Shown in pieces: positions 46,456-64,000 of a stretch of DNA of 64,000 nucleotides. The notes beneath the pieces are model-generated. The model was not told the DNA's origin, did no database searches, and saw nothing but the letters and a program-made list of their open reading frames with translations. Within the stretch, counting starts at the first letter, position 1; every line of letters starts with the position of its first letter. Source of the DNA: Geosiphon pyriformis uo1 (Eukaryota; Fungi; Glomeromycota); the NCBI GenBank assembly GCA_016748015.1, contig JAAOMT010000690.1:310001-374000 (forward strand), in the 5' to 3' direction. The position numbers and the translations under genes are program-made.

Positions 46456-47979
46456 ATAATCAAAAAACCAGCATCAATTTTCTTTTTGAGGGATTTTGAA
46501 ATTAGAGTTTCGCAATTGTAGATTATTCAAATTATATATAACAAGACAGAAAAGACTTTTTTTTCTAGAGCAGAGCTCTAGAAACATTGGCAAGATTGAT
46601 AAAAATTTTATCTTTTACGCCACAAAATTTTTACTGGAAAGTTGATTAATAACTTTGCTAGTATGTAAATATTTTTATTTTAAAAAAAAATTTCACTTAG
46701 TATATACTTTCTCAACACAAATTTTCAATATTTTTTTGTATCTATTGTTTTTTTTTTCTTTAACCCTTAAAGAGTGTCAATATTTAAACTTGTGCGCACC
46801 AAAATGTTTTAATTCAAAAAAAAATTCGTCCAATAAAATCGAAGTTTTAAAAAATACTTGAAGACTGCCTGAAAGGAAGTGAACTAATAATGCATGTACA
46901 TCACAGATGCATTAAAATTTTGCCTAAAAACTACTTCTCATTTCTGGAAAACAATAGCAGCATATTAATGTTTGTAACTTTGTTTTCCATTTTAAGGTTA
47001 GAATGTGTCGGTAATACCACATTACCAAACATAATATGTTTAAAATGGTGTCAATTGCAATCATAGGCCAAATTCTTAAATAGGCTTTTAAAATTATGAC
47101 TTTGGTAAACATATGATGATCATGAAAAGGCGCGAAAGAACCCGATAATTCCCTTTGTGTTCGTAATCTATTTTTATATCAATTGACAAAAACAACCAAA
47201 CAATCAACAAATAAAAAATGATCACAATATGATTGATTAAAAATAGATTTAAAGATGTTTCTTTAATGCGGATATGGTCTGGATGTCTGACGTTTTGTCG
47301 AATTTTTAGAGTTTTTGGAAATGAAAAAGTATCGCAGCTAGAATTTTCGAGATTTATCTTCAGGGTTTGTAACAAGCACACCTCAATGATAAGGAGATTT
47401 CCCGAATACGAAATCTTTTTTTTCACCGTCAAGACTGTTTTGACTCACGTTACTTAATTTATCAAAAAATTATATATGCTATCATATTGCGTCAAAATGA
47501 AAGAGATTTTATTTACCCGAAAAAAGTATCCTTCACTTTAGGCCTCTGGTTTTCACAATTCTCTGCCAATGAGAAACCATGTAACGCTCTTTTTTTAGGA
47601 AACCTATATCCGGTGAAAAACAGATCGAGAAAAAATAATAGATATAGGACAATCCTTAATATATAAAAATAGAATTTGAACATGTAATGTCCAAAGGAAG
47701 TTAAATTGTGAATTGTTTTTAGAGTTTAAATTTTTCTGGCAAGATTTTTTTATTTGAATTTCAAAATTCGCAACTTTCAAAATTGTCACATTGATTGAAT
47801 TAGTAGTGGTTCAACATAAAGATAATGATGAAAATTATTAGTCAAATTTATGCCAAAATAAAACTGGTGGCTTCTTATGGATGTTTACACTAGTGATATT
47901 CTCTTTATAGTGTTTGGGATTGTAAAAATCTGTCTAAGGTGCTATTTGGCCAAGATTGTTCTTCAAGTAAGAAATGGGT

Positions 47980-48412
47980 AAAGGCAAATCTCGCCAAGCC
48001 CATCCATCGCTTCAATGCTTCTGAGGGTGGTTTGTATACATCCTGACTAGTAACGTGCGGTTAAGGATACCTTCCGTCTTCTGGCGTTCGTCACGGCTTT
48101 CCCTTGCATTTTTTTGTTCCTGCGTTCTCTTCAGTAGCGAGAAGCTCTCCTTCCCTGCATGCAGCAGATGAAGACTGTGTTGACGTCAAGAATATCCTGG
48201 AAGAGCTTGCGCCCGTCAGAGGTCGCATCGTCGAAGAAGACCATGAGTTTTGCAGAATGGAGGGAGAGGATATATTGTAGGGGGCCAAAGGCAAATAGGC
48301 AGAGCCAATCACAGTGAGTAAGGGTAACGCACCGTGGTTTGATCGTTCCAGTAGGGTCTTAAGCCACTTGAAGTTGACATCAGAGCCAATATTCCTGATG
48401 AGCCCATATGTT
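47980..48412 (-). pseudogene. 5' fragment of the Fanzor2/TnpB-like gene, co-duplicated with the kinase
   Basis: Colinear with 54655-55090. Encodes LRPYWNDQ, QNSWSSST, RTLLVRMYTNHPQ/LKRWMGLARF, then is truncated. Confidence 0.75.
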
Positions 48413-48578
48413 GGGAAATCCAACAAATATTTTTATTTGCTATCAATAAAAAACTAATCAGGTTCAAAATCGCGAAATTAAATACCCAACCTTTTTCCTC
48501 TTTCCTGAACTAACTTCGCAAACTGCTACCAAAAAAGGTTAGCTCTAGGCCCGTGTCTCTAGTGCAAAACAAAAAAAG

Positions 48579-50482
48579 GATATTTCTCAAAAAACTCCTT
48601 CGCTTGATTTTACTCTCGATCATTCGAAGTTTTTAGATTCTGCTTGCTATATAGTTTTGAATTTTTTTCCCGAATGGGAACGGAAAGATATGAAGCTGGT
48701 AGAGAAGAAAGGAGGGCTTACTAATAAACGTAATAGAAATACGATTTGTGAAGTTTTAAGATATTTTATTGATGAAAATTCTATATTGATTCAATAGTCG
48801 TCATTTGTGAAAACATTCAAAAAAAGTCAAAAATCTTGGTGCGTGTTTTTGGTAAAAATTCCGAGTTACTAATTGATCGTGAACAAGAACTAAGGGTAAG
48901 CTTTCTACCTGGAAAGCACGGTTTTTTCTTTGATCATATCTCACCTTACTTGACCATAATAGACATTATTGAGCCTCTCGAAATTAGGATTATCACCACC
49001 CGTGTATGGAAGATTTCAAAACGGAATAGTCTATGGATNNNNNNNNNNNNNNNNNNNNTGAAGCTGGTAGAGAAGAAAGGAGGGCTTACTAATAAACGTA
49101 ATAGAAATACGATTTGTGAAGTTTTAAGATATTTTATTGATGAAAATTCTATATTGATTCAATAGTCGTCATTTGTGAAAACATTCAAAAAAAGTCAAAA
49201 ATCTTGGTGCGTGTTTTTGGTAAAAATTCCGAGTTACTAATTGATCGTGAACAAGAACTAAGGGTAAGCTTTCTACCTGGAAAGCACGGTTTTTTCTTTG
49301 ATCATATCTCACCTTACTTGACCATAATAGACATTATTGAGCCTCTCGAAATTAGGATTATCACCACCCGTGTATGGAAGATTTCAAAACGGAATAGTCT
49401 ATGGATGTATTCCAGGGGAACATCTTTTATTGAGTGATTTTAGTGATTTTAAGAAATCAGCGTTGGTGGCCAGACAGTTGGCTTTACTACATTCTACAGA
49501 AGTAGCAGGCCCAAATAATGTTGTTATATGGGGAATTATAAAAAAATGGCTTAATCAACGGTTTGTACGATTAAGAGTATAGCTGTATTGGTTGGATAGT
49601 AGATATCGCTTAAAAAAAATTTAGTTTCGAAAGAATTCAGTGATCCCAAAGACACGGAAAGATTTGCAAAGCATTATAAACTCAGCGATTTGAAGCAAGA
49701 GGTATTATATTCTTATAAAATGAAAGTCAATTTTTTTCACACCTACACCTACATTTACTATTATAATTATAACTTGATAGGCGACGAGCCTTCAAACAGC
49801 CCTCGAAAAAGTTCGCTCTCCAATTGTGTTCTGTCACAATGATTTATTACCTTTAAATATAATTTTCAATAAATCTGAAGAAAAAATTTCTTTCATCGAT
49901 TACGAATACGAATATTATAATTACAGAGGGTATGATATTGCGACCTTTTTCAGTGTATCTACTGGTGAGTTTCAGGTTTTAATTTTTATAAAAAATTTTG
50001 AATTGCTAAAAATGTTTTCTTCGTTAACAATAAAGGGCCTATGTATGATTTTACCCTTTTTCCAAAAAAGGACTTTCAAATTCGTTAGTTACGTGAATAC
50101 CCAGATCAAAGTGAACCTGGTAATAAAAATTTGGATATCGCCACTTGCCCCGATAGATTCTTAAGTAAATGTAAACACATCTTTTTTTTATCCCTTTAAG
50201 GACGACAAATAACACCAAATGAACTCGAGCAAATGTATGCTGAAGTTAACAAGTTTGCCCTGATATTACTTTTCCACCGTGGTCTATGGTGTTTAGTATT
50301 TGTCACCTTATTTATTGAGTATTGGTTTTATTAATCAGTATTTTTTAGAATGCAATTTTATCTTAACTCCATCCTTTCTTATTTTTTTATAACTGGCCGA
50401 CTTGAGCTATGATTTTTTAAAAATTTCGATTAGAGCTTTAGATCTGTATTTCCTGATTCGTGACGAAGTTCTCATGCTTTGA
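48579..50482 (+). pseudogene. Choline/ethanolamine kinase, copy 1, probable pseudogene
   Basis: GGLTNK, VRVFG, LIDREQE, GRFQNG, CHNDLLPLNI and IDYEY are present. Lesions: ATG replaced by AAG at an inversion junction; +1 insertion (AATCAACG vs AATCACG) at ~49557; ~20-bp deletion near 50396 removing the last splice acceptor. Confidence 0.8.
49039..49058. other. Assembly gap (20 N) with artefactually duplicated 348-bp flank
   Basis: 48691-49038 is repeated identically at 49059-49406. Confidence 0.9.
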
Positions 50483-51089
50483 TGAATAATGAATTTTAAC
50501 AAATTCTGGGGCGAAGAAATTAAAGAGATTACTGATTCATGATCTTTTTTAACGGTCCTATCGGGAAAATGAAATTTAAAAATTATTTTTACACTATTAA
50601 TTTATCTAAGGCTTGGAAAGTTTTTGTGATTACCTCGAAAATTTCCCGTACCGCTTACTGCTGTATAAAGATTGACATTTATGTTATCAATAAAACCTCG
50701 GTCTTTTTTGCCAATGAATTTAATTAATTTTTCAATATGAAGCTTATCTTTACAACGTCCGAGGTAGAATATGTGACAGAAACCCCAAATATACGCTGAT
50801 GATAAATCATAGCATGCACAATTTTACTTTTTAGTTTCTTAATTAGTTTTAACCACATTCATACTCACATCGCTGAAGGAAATGAAGTGTACTTTTATGC
50901 ATGCCATATATATTTCGTTTTTTCCCAGCAAAATATTAATACAAACCTTAATTTTATTCAACCAGAAAAATTGGCCCTAAAATTAAAAACATTATATGCG
51001 TTTTTCCTTAAAATGATTTGTTGTAAAAAAACCCCTTGTAGATCAATGCAAATTTCGTTTAACACTATTAATTATAGCAATTAACCAAT

Positions 51090-53370: not shown

Positions 53371-53459
53371 CACAGCCAATTTCTAAACAAAGAGGTTTAT
53401 GAACACAATATTGTGCTATGTAGCGCCTATTATTTTCTCCATGGTCATTTTAGGCCTAA

Positions 53460-55084
53460 GGCAATGCCCGGAGGAAGATTCATCTATCACAATCCCATAA
53501 TTACAACCGTTATAGATTTTGGACCCTCCGATTCGTTAAATGTAGCCACATTGACTACAAGTCATGGATGTGTAGGCTTCGTTCTGGATAATAACGTGAG
53601 CCCTTAATTTCTCACCTTAGATGATCAGACGTTGACAAAATAGATAGTGCGCTAGGCTAGCATATTTGCAACTGTTTTTCGTGTAATTATTCTCGCTTTT
53701 CGATTCACCATGTCCGATACCTCAAAGGGAGGAATGACAATAGCATCACGTTGGTGGGTGAAAAATGTGATAGCCTTTGTGTATTTCCGTTTACAAGCGA
53801 AAGATCTTTTGATGCATGCACTCAATCGCCTTTCTAATTAGCTTTCTAACGTTTTGAAGAGGTATTGCATTTATCTTTCTTTGAGCAAAGGTCATCCATA
53901 AATTTTCAGAGGCGAATAAAACGACTGATGTCACAAGAGCCTATTTTTGGTTAGGTAAATGGAGTGCGAATTCCATGATCTATGAAGACTGCATGAATAG
54001 AGCATCCCCTTGGGTTTCGTGGAGCTGTTTTTGGGTCTCGTATACCAGGCAAACTTCCACTCATTAGTTTTGTGAGCTTGGATTGGATCCACTTATTAAT
54101 TTTACGTTTTTTTCGAAGTGGAGAGGCCATAGTACATGTTTATCCTCGAAAAAAAATAAGAAATGGCATAAAAACAATGTAAATGATGATATAAAACAAT
54201 TTAAAAAATATAAAACGTAAAAAATTTATTATCTTTACTTTGGGTTGATGTGCATATTATTATATGGAAGGTAAGATACGTAGAAGCGGTTCGACAAAAT
54301 CCTGAGCACAAATTGTAATGTTGTGATGCAGTGCCTTGCAAGATTGAAAAGATGATGTGTTGTTACATCTTATTGTTGCTATCCATTACGTTTAATAACT
54401 TCATTTCGCGCAACCATTGCTTGATCAATCGCTTTGTCTGTAATGTTGGCGGGAGCTGAACCTCAGCAACTTCTTAAGAGCATGCCAAGACGGAAGATGG
54501 CCCTGCAAAATTTTCTTTCACGCCAGATAACCGAAAGATCATCAAAAAGAAGTTGTTTCTGTTGAAACGTTATAGGTTTTAACCATCCTTTTTTGTGATA
54601 CTATCTTGTTTCATGATGATGCGACGTCTTTGGTTCTATTTCACCACAGTATTAAAGGAAAATCTCGCCAAGCCCATCCATCGATTCAATGCTTCTGAGG
54701 GTGATTTGTATACATCTTAACTAGTAACGTGCGGTTGAGAGTACCTTCCGTCTTCGGGCGTTTGTCACGGCTTTCTCTTGCATTTTTTTGTTCCTGCGTT
54801 CTCTTCAGTAGCGAGAAGCTCTCCTTTCCTGCATGCAGCAGATGAAGACTGCGTTGACCTCAAGAATATCCTGGAGAAGTTTATGCCCGTCAGAGGTTGC
54901 ATCGTCGAAGAGAATCATGAGTTTTGTAGAATGGAGGGAGAAAATATATTGGAGGTCAAAGGGAAATAGGCAGAGCCAATCACAGTGAGTAAGGGTAATG
55001 CACCGTGGTTTGATCGTTCCAGTAGGGTCTTAAGCCCTTGGCATTTGAAGTTGACGCCAGAGCCGGTATTCCTGATGAGCCCAT
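53460..55084 (-). mobile_element. Decayed Fanzor2 / IS607-TnpB-like RNA-guided endonuclease gene (pseudogene)
   Basis: Ordered motifs across stops and frameshifts: STSNAKGLRPYWNDQ; RWMGLARFSFNTVV (HTH); PANITDKAID; RuvC-I IHAVFIDHGIRTPFT (Asp at 53980-53978); KIGSCDISRFIRL*KFMDDL; DAIVIPPFEVSDMVNRKARIITRKTVANMLA*/AHYLFCQRL; VIIQNEAYTSMTCSQCGYI*RIGGSKIY; GIVID[deleted]IFLRAL. Confidence 0.88.
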
Positions 55085-55306
55085 ATGTCGGGACTCGAGT
55101 GAGAAGTTGTTTTCGTCGTTTAAATCCTTTTTTTGTTTTGGACCACCTTTTTTGGTAGCAGTTTGGGGCATTTATTTTCGCGATTTTGAACCTGATGAGC
55201 AATTGATTGGTAGCAAACAAAATATTTGTTTGATTCAAGAAATTTGTGTAACCCTGATTGCATAAAGCAATCTCATTCATCAATCATCAATCGGGTGAGC
55301 GTAAAA

Positions 55307-57233
55307 ATGGATATTTCTCAAAAAACTCCTTCACTTGATTTTACTCTCGATCATTCGAAGTTGTTAGATTCTGCTTGCTATATAGTTTTGAATTTTTTTC
55401 CCGAATGGGAACGGAAAGATTTGAAGCTGGTAGAGAAGAAAGGAGGGCTTACTAATAAACGTAATAGAAATACGATTTGTGAAGTTTTAAGATATTTTAT
55501 TGATGAAAATTCTATATTGATTCAATAGTCGTCATTTGTGAAAACATTCAAAAAAAGTCAAAAATCTTGGTGCGTGTTTTTGGTAAAAATTCCGAGTTAC
55601 TAATTGATCGTGAACAAGAACTAAGGGTAAGCTTTCTACCTGGAAAGCACGGTTTTTTCTTTGATCATATCTCACCTTACTTGACCATAATAGACATTAT
55701 TGAGCCTCTCGAAATTAGGATTATCACCACCCGTGTATGGAAGATTTCAAAACGGAATAGTCTATGGATNNNNNNNNNNNNNNNNNNNNTGAAGCTGGTA
55801 GAGAAGAAAGGAGGGCTTACTAATAAACGTAATAGAAATACGATTTGTGAAGTTTTAAGATATTTTATTGATGAAAATTCTATATTGATTCAATAGTCGT
55901 CATTTGTGAAAACATTCAAAAAAAGTCAAAAATCTTGGTGCGTGTTTTTGGTAAAAATTCCGAGTTACTAATTGATCGTGAACAAGAACTAAGGGTAAGC
56001 TTTCTACCTGGAAAGCACGGTTTTTTCTTTGATCATATCTCACCTTACTTGACCATAATAGACATTATTGAGCCTCTCGAAATTAGGATTATCACCACCC
56101 GTGTATGGAAGATTTCAAAACGGAATAGTCTATGGATATATTCCAGGGGAACATCTTTTATCGAGTGATTTTAGTGATTTTAAGAAATCAGCGTTGGTGG
56201 CCAGACAGTTGGCTTTACTACATTCTACAGAAGTAGCAGGCCCAAAGAATGTTATTATATGGGGAATTATAAAAAAATGGCTTAATCACGGTTTGTACGA
56301 TTAAGAGTATAGCTGTATTGGTTGGATAGTAGGTGTGGCTTAAAAAAAGTTTAGTTTCGAAAGAATTCAGTGATCCCAAAGACACGGAAAGATTTGCAAA
56401 GCATTATAAACTCAGCGATTTGAAGCAAGAGGTATTATATTCTTATAAAATGAAAGTCAATTTTTTTCACACCTACACCTACATTTACTATTATAATTAT
56501 AACTTGATAGGCGATGAACCTTCAAACAGCCCTCGAAAAAGTTCGCTCTCCAATTGTGTTCTGTCACAATGATTTATTACATTTAAATATAATTTTCAAT
56601 AAATCCGATGAAAAAATTTCTTTCATCGATTACGAATACGGATATTATAATTACAGAGGGTATGATATTGCGACCTTTTTCAATGAATTTACTGGTGAGT
56701 TTCAGGTTTTAATTTTTATAAAAAACTTTGAATTGCTAAAAATGTTTTCTTCGTTAACAATAAAGGGCCTATGTATGATTTTACCCTTTTTCCAAAAAAG
56801 GACTTTCAAATTCGTTGGTTGCGTGAATACCTAGATCAAAGTGAACCTGGTAATAAAAATTTGGATATCACCACTTGCCCCGATAGATTCTTAAGTAAAT
56901 GTAAACACATCTTTTTTTTATCCCTTTAAGGACGACAAATAACACCAAATGAACTCGAGCAAATGTATGCTGAAGTTAACAAGTTTGCCCTGCTATCACT
57001 TTTCCACCGTGGTCTATGGTGTTTAGTATTTGTCACCTTATTTATTGAGTATTGGTTTTATTAATCAGTATTTTTTAGAATGCAATTTTATCTTAACTCC
57101 ATCCTTTCTTATTTTATATAACTGGCAGATGCAAGTCCATTTTGCAGCCGACTTGAACTATGATTTTTTAAAAATTTCGATTGCACATTTAGATCGATAT
57201 TTCCTGATTCGTGACGAAGTTCTCATGCTTTGA
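55307..57233 (+). CDS. Choline/ethanolamine kinase, copy 2, apparently intact apart from the gap artefact
   Basis: MDISQKTPSLDF..., GGLTNK, LVRVFGKNSELLIDREQE, YGRFQNGIVYGYIPG, Brenner motif VFCHNDLLHLNI, FIDYEYGYYNYRGYDIATFFNEFTG, HRGLWCL|MQVHFAADLNYDF; GT-AG introns. Confidence 0.88.
55770..55789. other. Assembly gap (20 N) with artefactually duplicated 348-bp flank
   Basis: The same 348-bp segment sits on both sides of the gap, as at 49039. Confidence 0.9.
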
Positions 57234-58823
57234 TGAATAATGAATTTGAACAATTTGGGGCGAAGAGATTACAGGGGTTACTGATTCACGGTCTTTTTTA
57301 ATGGTCCTATCGAGGAAAATGAAATTCAAATTTTATTTTTACACTGTTAATTTTTCTAAGGCTTTGAAAGTTTTTGTGATTACCTCGAACATTTCTGTAC
57401 TGCTTACCGCTGACATTTCTTTTTAATGAAATCTCGGTCTTTTTTGCCAATGAATTTTTATTATGTTTTCAATATGAAGCTTATCTTTGCAATGTCCAGC
57501 AAAGAAATTTTTTGATGATACTATAACAGAATAAAATTTGTCACAGAAACTCCAAATTGTTAATCAGTTTTAACCACATTCATATTTTCTAATCTTTTAA
57601 GTTTTTTTCATATTGCTGAATGAAATAAAGTGAACTTTTCTGCAAGTCTTATATATTTCGTTTCTTTTTCAGCAAAATATTAATACAAACCTTAATTTTA
57701 TTCAACCTGAAAATTTTGGAAATAATAAAAGACTAGCGTGGCTACACGTTTAATATGAAACATTATTTGATGTCAAAATTTGCTTTATAAGCGTCTTTCC
57801 TTAAAAAATATGATTTATTGTAAAATAATAATATACTAATAAAAAAGACAACGTTTAATAAAAACCTTTAATTCAGTATACACGAACCAAGCTTCATTTG
57901 AAAGTGTTCAGAGTTCCCAAGTTTTTCGAGAAAAATTTATTATTTCAGCAAGTTTTTAAAAAGAGTTTGAAGCTAAAATTATGGATGTCATCTTTTTACC
58001 TATTCAAATCTTTTTTTCTCCAAACATAAATATTTGGTTAGCTGAAAACGTCTCACCTATTAGCTTTTATTATCATTCGAGTACACGACATATTTCATAG
58101 AATATTATAATTTTCTTTAATTAAACTTAATAATTTAAAAGTTATCAATCGGATGTGGCGGGTTATTAGCTTACTTTTTCTAATGTAAAAGTAGGAGCCT
58201 CAATTAGAGATGTGAAAAATCTAAAAGATACTTTTTATTAAGCCTCAACCAAAACTGTATCTAGATTCTGAATAATAATTTACTCTTTTATTTTGAAGCT
58301 TTCTAGAACATAAAGTGCAAATCACCAAATACTTGCGTATTTTATCAGAAATTCGATTTGAAAATTTTAATTATGGGTATGTTAAGCTTTGGGCAAAACA
58401 TTTGGTTTTTTACATAAAATTTAGAAAGAAAAGCATAATATTAGTCTAATAAACTTTTAAGGATGCGAGATAAAAATACAAATGATAAAGGCTATAATCA
58501 TAAGTTGTTTATTTTACAAAAATAGAGTTTTCCAAGTCTATTTCAAATTCATAAAAAAATATTAACTTGAAAATCTAAGGATATTAGAATTTTGGCACAT
58601 AATATAATTTACATTACATTGTTATATTTTGTAATTTAAAGCATTAAAAGAATAGAATGAATTTAAAATAAAATTATGCTAATATCAATTTAACGATTAA
58701 AAAATTTGCATGGTTTAATTTTTTATAATCTTCATATTATAGCATTAAAGCATTAAAGAATCAAAGTATTTTAAGAGACAAAAACAATGTTCAATTTAAA
58801 TTAACTTTTTTTGTTTATTAGAA

Positions 58824-59446: not shown

Positions 59447-60681
59447 ATGGCCACAAAAGCTTTCTTTTTGATATTCATTACCTCTTGTTTATATTGGGTA
59501 TCATTAACCCATGCTGTTCCTACTAAAAAAAACAAATTCGATACCTTAGTGGTTTTTGGCGACTCTGCAACAGGTAATTTGACCATTTTCTTTCAAGACA
59601 ATTTACCTTTAATTCTCTATAATTTTTGATAATTTTTACGAATTAATCCACACCATTTCTTTATTATAGATAATGGAAATACATATAAATTGACAAATGG
59701 TACATGGCCAGTATCCGTTTACTACAATGGCAGATTCACGAACGGTAAAGTTTGGCCAGAATATATGGCCGAAGAGCTTAACTTGGAATTATTGGATTTT
59801 GCATATGGTGGAGCGACAACAGAGTATGTTAACTCTTAAATTAAATGGAGAGTTCCTATTTTAAGAATAGGATTCTAAATACCTGTTCTGTCTCAATTTC
59901 GAATATTAATATAGCAATAATTTGGTTCAAGGTAAAGCAAATAAGTTCTTTCAAGAATTATTATGATTAAAGATTTATGGAATTTTTTGATACAGGTGTG
60001 TCTGGTAGATCAGGTACAGTTAAAGTCCCCTCAATATTGGAACAAGTTGACTTATATTTAGCCACAAATCCCACAAAGGAAAAGTTAAAGACAACCATTG
60101 CAGTGGTAAGCTCGTTAATTGATAATTCTAATTAAATCTATTATTTGATTCTATTATTGAGAGAGGCTGAACTCCTATTTTTATTTTAGACCTGGGCTGC
60201 TGGTAATGACTATGTATATAGCAACTTCACCGCAGATCCAAAACAAGTTGTGGAACACTTATCGAAATCTTGGGTAAAACTTTACAACAATGGAATCCGG
60301 AACTTACTTTCCCCAGGTCTACCTGATATTTCAGTTGTGCCCTACTTGAAAAACTCTACAACCGAAGTACATGCTAAGTTGGAAAAACTCCACGTCGTGC
60401 ACAATCAGATTTTGAATGCAGCTTTGCAAAAATTTAAGAAAGAGCACCAAGATATGAGAATATACACATTCAACCCTGCCGGATACCTGGAGGCTCTTGA
60501 AAAGAACTATTTAAAGATTATGGGCATAACTGACTATGTAGATGCTTGTTTTAATACTTTAGTTGACCCGCCAACTCTTTGTGAAACCCCTCAAAGTTAT
60601 TTGTTTTGGGATCCTCTACATCAAACTACCTACTTTCATAAACTTATAGCTGAGGGATTTATAATTAAATTAAAGCTTTAA
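59447..60681 (+). CDS. Secreted GDSL/SGNH lipase-esterase, multi-exon
   Basis: Signal peptide, LVVFGDSAT|DNGN, GRFTNGKVWPEY, DFAYGGAT, WAAGNDY, YLFWDPLH (DxxH). Confidence 0.92.
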
Positions 60682-61229
60682 TTTTTAGTCATACATGTTT
60701 TGAAAAGAAGCTAATTCTTTAATGGAATTTTTCCTATAATAATTCTCTTACCATGTAAATTATTCTCGTTAAAAACCAATTAAAAAAGTCCGAATTAAAA
60801 GCTGTGAAAAATTATAAAAATTTAGTTATTTGTGAATGACCATTAATCAGTTTGGAATGCCTACTTTTTAATTAAAGATTTAATATGAAAAGAATGCAAA
60901 TAGAATTTAGACAGCTCGAATATTCGTTAACCACAAAAAAGTTCTTAACTTTTTTGATTAGCGGCATTATACCTTGATTATTCGTTTTCAGGTTCATAAC
61001 CCAAAATATACATAAAGGAATGTTTATCAATCAAACTTCATGTATTTAATGATACTCTTATCTATTTCCTTTTTATCAAACTAATTTTAATAACGAAGCC
61101 ATCATCCCTATTACTAAAAAAAAAAGTTTACTTTTACCTGCGGTCTTAGCACCAAGCAAAAAGTTACTAAATCATTTTAAATGCTAAAATAATTGTTATT
61201 AAAATTAAGAAGTTACATCTGTGACAATT

Positions 61230-62335
61230 TATTTCAAATAAAAAAAATCTTAAATAACAATAGCAATTTCTTTTTACTTTTTTTTTTATTATAAAATGGC
61301 TTTTTGAATAATAACAAAATTAAATTTAATTAAAATATTTTCATTGTCAAAACTATTTGTATCTATTTAATATAAAAAATAACCAATAAAGTAATAATAA
61401 TAATAGCAGCAACATATGCCAAAAACCATTAAAAAACAATTTCTCACTTAATATTTTAGAAAAACGTTTCTATAATAATAAATGAGTTCTGTTAAATTTG
61501 TTATGATATAATTATTATTATTTATTAATACATTAATTTTGACTAAATAAATTTTGAACTTAAAGTATATTAATAAAAATCAATTTTAAAAAAATATATA
61601 TTTGATTAAATACATTATTTATAGTACCTATTATATTATATTATAATAGATTGAAACTAAATTTAAAAATAAATTTAATAAAGTAATTTATTAATTTGTA
61701 TAATTTTTTTATGAATTTGATATATCATTATTATTTAAATATATGTTATATATTTTATTTATCTAAACTAAAAATCAATTAAAAAATTAGGTTAAAAAAA
61801 AAAATAATGATTATTCAAAATATTTATTTTTTTAATATATTTTGTTTTTTTTTTAATATAGTTTTTATAAAATTATTAAACACAATTTTAAATAAAATCA
61901 AAATATTTAAATGTAAAAAACAGTAATAATGTTAACAAAATATTTCAAAAAATTTTGTGTTTATATACACAAATACATTTATTTCATACATAGACTAATT
62001 AATTTTTTTTAATAAATTATAGTTAATTATTTTTTTATATTAATATTTAATGTAATATATTTTAATAAAATTAGTAATTAAGAATTAAAAATACAAAGTA
62101 ACTTATTAAGATATACCAATACATTATTAAATTAAACTAATTATTTATTATTGTGTAATCATTTTTATGTTTTTTATTTTAACAAATTCAATTTTAAATT
62201 TTATAAATATGTATAAAAGCAAATTTATAAATTCCAAATGAATAGCATTATATATGCAGTCTTTATTGATTCTGGGCGTTTGTATACTCTTCATTTATTG
62301 TTTTTGTTAAAAAATTTATAAGTAAAATTAAAATA
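61230..62335 (+). mobile_element. Second, heavily C-to-T/G-to-A mutated Fanzor2-like copy (5' part through RuvC-I)
   Basis: 62215-62275 aligns to the reverse complement of 53973-54032 (39/61 identical by hand) and reads YAVFIDSG. Upstream FISNKKNLK (~61230) and *MSSVKFV (~61478) correspond in order to STSNAKGLR and WMGLARF. Confidence 0.65.
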
Positions 62336-64000
62336 TCCAAACAATGTTTTATCTTTTTTTAATTAATATTCTCAATTTTTTGCAATTTTAAAGATATTTT
62401 TATATAATTTTACTCAAGAGTGTTAAATGAAGAGTTTTTATAAAAATACTCTTTATTGATTGTCTCTTGATTTTTTACTTCAACATAACCAGTTTTCAGA
62501 GTTAACGCTATGAAAAATACTTGGAAACTGTATGCTCTTTTTATAGCTTAAGCAAATTGATTCTGGACCTATTTCAAAAATCTCAGTTATATATATACAC
62601 TTTTCAAAAGATGCCTGGCAAGTTCTATAATTGTTGTTTAGCCATGGGTAATTTAAAAAAATCTGGCATTATAAACGCTCTGATTCTATAAGCGTAAAAC
62701 TTTGGCCAAATCATTATAATGAGAACAATAATTTGATCTGGCTTGCCTTTAAGATTAGTTTGCAAATAGTCGTTTCACCACCAAATGAGTCAAATGAAAA
62801 AGAAAAATTTGGGAAACTGAAAACCAATTTCAAAAACCAAAAATATTTTCAAAAGAAAATTACAATTTACCAAGACTATAGTCTTTCTGAAAGTTCTCTT
62901 ATCTTTTTGGAATGATAACTTTATTCTTGGCAAATTTTCTTTGTGTCTAAAAACATAGCAAATTTTACAAATGGTTTAGTTCGAAAATAATTAATTTTTA
63001 CGTAAAAAAGTATCTTGAATTAGCATTCAATTAAATGATCAAATTCCTTTTGGCAGAAAATTTAGAATATAATTTTGACTGGCAAACTGAGCGCTACCAA
63101 AAGCTAAATTCATTAATTTCGATTCCTAATAATTGGCAAGGTATTCTGGCCATGGAAAGCCCAAATTTACTTCACATATTGTCTTTTGGAAAATGCAAAT
63201 TCATTTTCCAAATTCAATTGCTAACCTTTTAAACTGATTTATTATCAGGATTTTTCCATGAAATTAAAAAGCTGAGCTAAAGAACTCGGAGGCTCGAGAA
63301 AAAAATTTCGATATGAAAGAAATATTTTTTTACTTAAATATAATTTTTATTAATGTTAAAATATTTCTTTCATATTAAAATTTCGGAGTTTTTTTTTCAC
63401 CATTAACAATTGTAGAAGTCAATGAATACAATGAAACCAACCGGGGTGAAAATTAACCAAGATTACATACATGCACTGTATTTTTGTTTCAAATTTCCTA
63501 TTCTATCTGACAGTTGAAGTTTGAAGTAAATCTCTCCCTTTTCCAGGTGACAAAGCGGATCCCCATAAAGCCATTTTCGAGCTATAAAAAGATAGAATAC
63601 ATTTTCTGAGCAAAAACCATCAATTTTTCAACCTATACATTTAGAGCTCTTTCATGAAGAAAAAAGCTCCGAAAAAGATATACAAATTTCAAAAAATCCA
63701 AATGGTAAAAATTTCGACCCAGCCAGTGAACTTGAATGTTTTAAAAACCTAACATTAACTTTAGAATGTATTATTAAAAAAAATATAGATTGAAAATATT
63801 TTTTCCAGAATAATTATTTAGTAATCAATACAGAAAAATTTTTTTTTTGTAGAAATAAAAGGTTTTAAACTTTCCTTCATTTTAAGATAACAATCATGAT
63901 GATACATTGCTAAATCACATGTTCAAACATTCCCTTTGATCATGTCTCATAACAATAAATGTTTTGAAAAATGGATTGGGCTTAATATTTCGAGGTACTA

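Follow-up and report, generated by a model that had tools for sequence, protein, structure and literature searches.

The closest solved relative of the gene family considered here is Fanzor2 of Acanthamoeba polyphaga mimivirus (ApmFz2, 9B0L), an intact and active nuclease of 520 amino acids with an omega-RNA (PMC11832414). In a search of the PDB this protein (9b0l_P) matched the family over the TNB/RuvC-III region at E=3.9e-11, ahead of bacterial Cas12f/TnpB structures (about E=1e-6); Fanzor1 (8GKH) was absent from the PDB matches at E<=1, and a phmmer search of the PDB with the RuvC-I open frame of one member locus (L003) gave no match at E<=1. The rearranged catalytic residue Glu467 of ApmFz2 ('NEY[LT]T') aligns with the E of 'NEVYTS' in the better-preserved copies of the family (PMC11832414), and Asp501 aligns with the second D of 'DRD' in the same copies. 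At the canonical place, too, a Glu is found in the copies ('PPFEVS'), and the relic that is the subject of this report has the equivalent of the RuvC-I Asp (the D in 'IDSG'). The two systems differ in preservation, however, as the copies seen in this genome are all broken and the relic, at about 100 nt, is without the downstream catalytic and zinc-finger parts. Fanzor2-like would seem a fair, if provisional, label for the family, its placement being based on the best PDB match.

For Fanzor proteins in general the motif D-X(125,275)-[TS][TS]-X-X-C4 zinc finger-X(5,50)-RD has been given, and zygomycetes and chytrids are listed as fungal hosts of Fanzor1, IS607-type elements as the main carriers of Fanzor2 (Bao & Jurka 2013, PMC3627910). 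The family described here is similar in that a TnpB-like gene is carried by short, multicopy eukaryotic elements and the motif is recognisable across the family copies, the better-preserved of which carry the full [TS][TS]-X-X-C4 zinc finger together with the RD. A likeness to prokaryotic TnpB and Cas12f (PF07282, Cas12f1-like TNB) is also evident: the better-preserved relatives score 45.1-72.8 bits against PF07282, for which the gathering threshold is 26.3 bits, and even the decayed copy described below exceeds this cut-off when its stops are read through. Unlike the prokaryotic systems, the family lives in a eukaryote and its gene contains an AT-rich, intron-like stretch; by E-value, Fanzor2 is also closer to it than bacterial TnpB is.

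The window, that is, the whole stretch of 64,000 nt that was analysed (G000:C785:310001-374000), comes from a fungal genome of 128 Mb in 792 contigs with roughly 30% GC. At 53414-55131 on the minus strand it holds a near full-length Fanzor/TnpB-like pseudogene, referred to here as copy 1, which belongs to a subfamily that we call A and is matched at 1676 bits by profile A, the profile of that subfamily from 13 other loci. Copy 1 has many stops and frameshifts, between which recognisable pieces occur in all three frames ('NEWKFAW', VYETQKQLHETQGDA, SIHAVFIDHGIRTPFT, AIVIPPFEVSDMV and IIQNEAYTSMTCSQCG). Reading through two TAA codons (window positions 53482-53649) gives a PF07282 score of 29.3 bits; 'YTSMTC' lies about 138 residues past the Asp, and the second CxxC and 'DRD' are degraded. 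In the genome as a whole there are at least 74 DNA matches to copy 1, at 68-90% identity, and a second subfamily, B, typified by the locus L027 (G000:C666:348641-351835), has at least 74 genomic matches of its own. The two subfamilies are related, profile B matching copy 1 at E=8.4e-66.

At least 82 matches to the TNB domain are present in the genome, and the preliminary description, which had proposed from this stretch that Fanzor was a multicopy family here, was right on this point. None of the copies seen is intact: the relic is no more than a fragment, stops and frameshifts interrupt copy 1, and the longest open frame among the TNB matches is 183 amino acids, so that an open reading frame as in an active Fanzor element was found in none of them (loci listed with TNB open frames include L031:1441-1950:- and L037:1201-1731:+). 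That at least two related subfamilies spread in this genome, with all copies seen now dead, is relevant to the mining of fungi for Fanzor2-like nucleases. As to composition, subfamily B is much AT-richer than subfamily A (consensus GC 0.27 vs 0.42, and 0.11-0.26 in the 5' half of L027). AT-rich B copies still align well with one another, which argues that the AT-richness is largely a shared, inherited state of the subfamily. The analysis of the family worked with search profiles, with majority states from which substitutions were counted, and with a single consensus stretch of 76 nt as a comparison.

The sequence at 62194-62311 on the plus strand, with its aligned core at 62213-62289, is very probably a non-functional and truncated remnant of a Fanzor2-like gene of subfamily B, derived from an insertion separate from copy 1. 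Profile B, which was made from B loci outside the window only and includes no window sequence, matches the core at 22.2 bits (nhmmer; E=1.6e-7 window-wide, and E=1.7e-9 when the target is a 1.5-kb sub-sequence around the block), and 62194-62311 is the envelope of that match. The relic is therefore significantly homologous to members of the family located outside the window. Our empirical null for profile B was about 243 kb of reversed real DNA, in which the top decoy score was 1.1 bits, and this confirms the calibration of the E-value. A sensitive blastn search with 61000-62750 as the query and the Fanzor-bearing loci retrieved from the genome as targets aligned the block with L027 at 49 of 64 identical positions and with L036 at 46 of 64, each above the identity between the block and copy 1. 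Used singly as queries, the copies L048 and L046 also match the relic (E=1.8e-5 and 2.3e-3, respectively); they and L047 are diverged B-type copies that have in common with the relic non-consensus states such as 'ATAGC' and 'TTTGTA'.

Relative to the B consensus the relic is identical at 53 of 76 positions, and the differences, apart from 1 indel, are transitions (14 GC>AT and 4 in the reverse direction) and 5 transversions. The reading frame is kept: the relic reads KQIYKFQMNSIIYAVFIDSG where the consensus reads KQVHETQVDRFIHAVSIDPG, with 9 of the 20 residues the same and 7 of the replacements explicable by codon changes consisting of transitions only. The RuvC-I catalytic Asp stands in its 'h-h-h-D-P-G' context, as 'AVFIDSG' in frame where most copies have 'AVSIDPG', the change from Pro to Ser being a single C>T. 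A [TS][TS]-X-X-C4 zinc finger with an RD, sought 125-275 residues past the Asp, was not recognisable downstream, the relic carries no TNB part, and Pfam gave no match to its 34-codon frame. When the genome was searched at the DNA level with 61100-62400, all matches, whether on one strand or the other, were AT-rich and of low complexity and none lay over the block, and an Rfam scan of 60700-62900 was without a match. The relic has no present-day function; it is ordinary transposon debris in a genome with well over a hundred such decayed copies, and of little consequence, being a further dead piece of a nuclease gene that was carried by transposons and whose family is abundant here and is known from fungi.

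A larger feature had been proposed in the preliminary description, namely a second Fanzor copy of 1.1 kb at 61230-62335, and what we can detect of it is 62194-62311 together with one weak 19-mer, the signal-bearing length of the relic being only about 77-118 nt. A whole second copy (about 61230-62335 or longer) might nevertheless have been hypermutated in place by a RIP-like process, leaving only the RuvC-I block visible, and the position of AT-rich DNA where the N-terminal half would be expected fits such a scenario. We regard it as unlikely, and largely refuted by the absence of colinear similarity outside the block. In anchored global alignments to copy 1 the 1000 nt upstream gave z=0.75 to 1.0 and the 551 nt downstream z=-0.2 to -0.3, even though transitions were scored as cheap or free; the lack of such similarity was the outcome that the preliminary description had itself named as speaking against its proposal. 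Similarly, the flanks of the relic gave z from -1.6 to +3.0 against 8 B copies, with an upstream mean near 0, whereas true B copies aligned with each other as positive controls gave flank values of z=8-37. For 61230-62190 we found no homology to copy 1 or to the B copies even with transition-tolerant scoring. This DNA has 7-18% GC, the spacer at 61180-62200 having 7.5-18% GC and the DNA upstream of the block 7.5-12.5% GC with AT-rich tandem arrays. Moreover, once a gene is dead, nothing would preserve a single 100-nt patch (70% identity) when the DNA on either side of it is erased.

Two further observations had seemed to extend the copy. Upstream, the 21-mer TAA ATG AGT TCT GTT AAA TTT at 61479 had been read as back-mutating to 'WMGSARF', and it does fit 'WMG.ARF' after back-transition, with 12 identities and 6 forward transitions to copy 1. 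Its distance to the block is 736 nt, the equivalent distance in copy 1 being 648 nt. However, an equally good match was found within 150 nt of the colinear position for 18 of 136 copy-1 21-mers (13%), so that matches of this quality are common by chance and the 21-mer at 61479 is not evidence for a longer copy. Downstream, weak colinear signals do exist: the flank scores slightly above zero with some of the B copies (z=3.0, 2.5 and 1.9), and 62505-62523 (+) is a candidate second colinear scrap of the relic, corresponding to profile positions 972-990 just past RuvC-II. This match is weak and was recognised post hoc (nhmmer score -9.4, on a diagonal 13 nt off that of the block), and a colinear match at least as good arose in 3 of 300 bin-shuffles (p about 0.01). 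It is possible that a patchy longer remnant reaches to about 62523. Pairwise nhmmer searches with L046, L047 and L048 did not extend the relic past the block. Since L047, a B copy of similar divergence (69-81% identical), was detected over about 850 nt, the rest of the relic's element would appear to have been deleted or replaced and not mutated away in place, and this is the simplest reading of the truncation.

The substitution spectrum also bears on a RIP-like origin. The changes left by RIP are almost all transitions, and its C>T/G>A mutations cluster in a single dinucleotide context. The relic resembles the RIP relics of ascomycetes in being a dead, C>T/G>A-enriched repeat copy beside very AT-rich DNA: of the 23 differences that separate the block from the B consensus, 14 are GC>AT transitions, and C>T/G>A changes outnumber C>A/G>T changes 14:1. 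Unlike those relics, it shows no preference for CpA or for any other dinucleotide, the contexts of the 14 changes being CpA (4), CpC (4), CpT (4) and CpG (2), nor can its AT-rich flank be read as the element altered by transitions. The same holds for the family, as private C>T events among 38 aligned copies occurred at 0.030-0.042 per site-copy across CpA, CpC, CpG and CpT (within subfamily A at 0.038, 0.030, 0.035 and 0.034, respectively). In every copy the most frequent change is the GC>AT transition, with a share of the differences of 33-50% for subfamily A and 14-62% for subfamily B; the share in the relic, 52-61%, is at the high end of the B range and within it, and does not exceed that of many other copies. 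Family-wide, transversions are about as common as transitions. A RIP-like origin is thus unsupported, and the spectrum looks like ordinary AT-biased neutral decay.

A broader version of the idea would be that the AT-rich islands of this non-Dikarya-like fungal genome are transposon graveyards made by context-free GC>AT hypermutation, of which the block is one surviving patch. This we consider very improbable, judging it on one 100-nt relic and not genome-wide: the purine/pyrimidine pattern of the element has left no trace in the flanks, and the spectrum, as noted, is like that of ordinary decay.

The relationship between the block and copy 1, from which the relic was originally recognised, deserves separate consideration, as it is here that one would have to argue for an accidental likeness of AT-rich intergenic DNA to the best-conserved motif of Fanzor. 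The alignment of 62215-62275 (+) with the reverse complement of 53973-54032 stands, with small corrections to its counts. Where 39 of 61 identities and 21 substitutions, 13 of them C>T or G>A, had been reported, we count 40 of 61 identical columns, 20 substitutions (8 C>T, 4 G>A, 1 A>G and 7 transversions) and 1 indel. In a test area of 1.3 kb x 1.7 kb, the local score against copy 1 was equalled by none of 200 dinucleotide shuffles with a transition-tolerant matrix and by 3 of 200 with a plain matrix, and so the alignment does beat a shuffled null. Real AT-rich DNA scores alike, however: with the permissive matrix real AT-rich chunks reached 65 and 72 and reversed decoys up to 65, as compared with 67 observed, which means that the dinucleotide-shuffle null is too lenient. 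Nor does profile A find the block significant (E=1 window-wide, -1.4 bits). Against copy 1 alone the block is only marginal and indistinguishable from chance.

It is the comparison with subfamily B that makes a chance resemblance barely credible, given that profile B reaches its window-wide and sub-sequence E-values against decoys of at most 1.1 bits in 243 kb, that single B-type copies match the block, and that the block has subfamily-specific states as well as the correct indel. The contrast between 22.2 bits with profile B and -1.4 bits with profile A also places the block in another subfamily, and it is not a sister of copy 1. The earlier suggestion of a second Fanzor-derived sequence on the strand opposite to copy 1 is borne out by the profile-B match on the plus strand. 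That a relic invisible by way of its nearest copy becomes clear with the profile of a second subfamily calls for caution in counts of Fanzor relics.

Several details of the codons around the catalytic Asp were read correctly from the two sequences. A single step separates CCT (Pro), the codon of most other genomic copies, from CAT (copy 1) and likewise from TCT (the block), and copy 1 is short of one family base that the block has, with the frame kept. The ancestral D-P-G deduced from this comparison was also correct. There was no need to reconstruct it from two copies, as most A and B copies directly show GAT CCT GG; with both the DPG and the extra base visible in most genomic copies, the two-copy reconstruction adds nothing.

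The relic lies in an AT-rich spacer between an intron-bearing GDSL-lipase gene (59447-60681) and a dead lipase copy (63161-63090, minus strand). That the block is itself the decayed first exon of a lipase pseudogene ('VVFGDS' to 'AVFIDS') is scarcely conceivable, since, for all that the live lipase begins '...DTLVVFGDSAT' and dead lipase DNA is found just downstream (the exon-2 match at 63161-63090, E=0.003), tblastn with lipase exon 1 gave no match at 62200-62300 (E<=10), local DNA alignment to the lipase gene passes over the motif, the minus-strand orientation of the adjoining dead copy would put exon 1 to the right, and Fanzor profile B accounts for 77 nt at the DNA level.

We favor, then, a history in which the relic is what is left of a subfamily-B insertion. 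A short transposable element with a Fanzor2-like gene (a eukaryotic TnpB-like, RNA-guided nuclease) would once have multiplied in this fungal genome. The relic would represent an insertion separate from copy 1, in the opposite orientation and of the L027-like subfamily B as opposed to A, of which nothing more than the RuvC-I segment with the first catalytic aspartate has been kept. Once it was inactive, substitutions, for the most part GC>AT transitions, will have built up in it to about 30%, as in other old copies, and the rest of the element was probably lost by deletion or replaced with AT-rich, partly tandem-repeat DNA. The order of these events, and deletion as the cause of the truncation, are what we infer from the comparison of copies; the homology itself, the assignment to subfamily B, the length over which homology is detectable and the spectrum of substitutions were demonstrated.

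A third Fanzor piece in the window has a different explanation. The sequence at 47979-48416 on the minus strand is a partial duplicate of copy 1 covering its 5' 440 nt (90% identical to 54653-55093), and it lies within a segmental duplication in which 54653-57716 corresponds to 47979-50972 (roughly 3 kb, about 6.7 kb apart, 90-92% identical). The duplicated segment carries the 5' 440 nt of copy 1 together with kinase-like ORFs. The piece therefore stems from duplication and not from transposition.

Some minor observations concern the surrounding DNA. The left end of the relic block (62214-62247) and 60770-60803, just past the lipase stop codon, are identical at 26 of 33 positions, with a score near chance. 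A resemblance between 62818-62923 and 60770-60868 in the 3' flank of the lipase gene is likewise near the chance score, and 62818-62923 may belong to the dead lipase copies. Elsewhere in the genome, an AT-rich stretch of L023 (about 2288-2411; G000:C784, near 626.8 kb) aligns loosely with positions 952-1088 of copy 1, where SPLRKKRKINKW precedes RuvC-I at a short distance, and may be a further relic or a chance match. Finally, within the segmental duplication, 55422-56137 (with a run of N near 55770-55790) and 48691-49406 contain two 348-bp blocks beside the N gap that are 100% identical to the paralogous segment, in surroundings that are only about 92% identical, and there is also a 368-bp internal tandem repeat; these features look like an artefact of assembly or gap filling.
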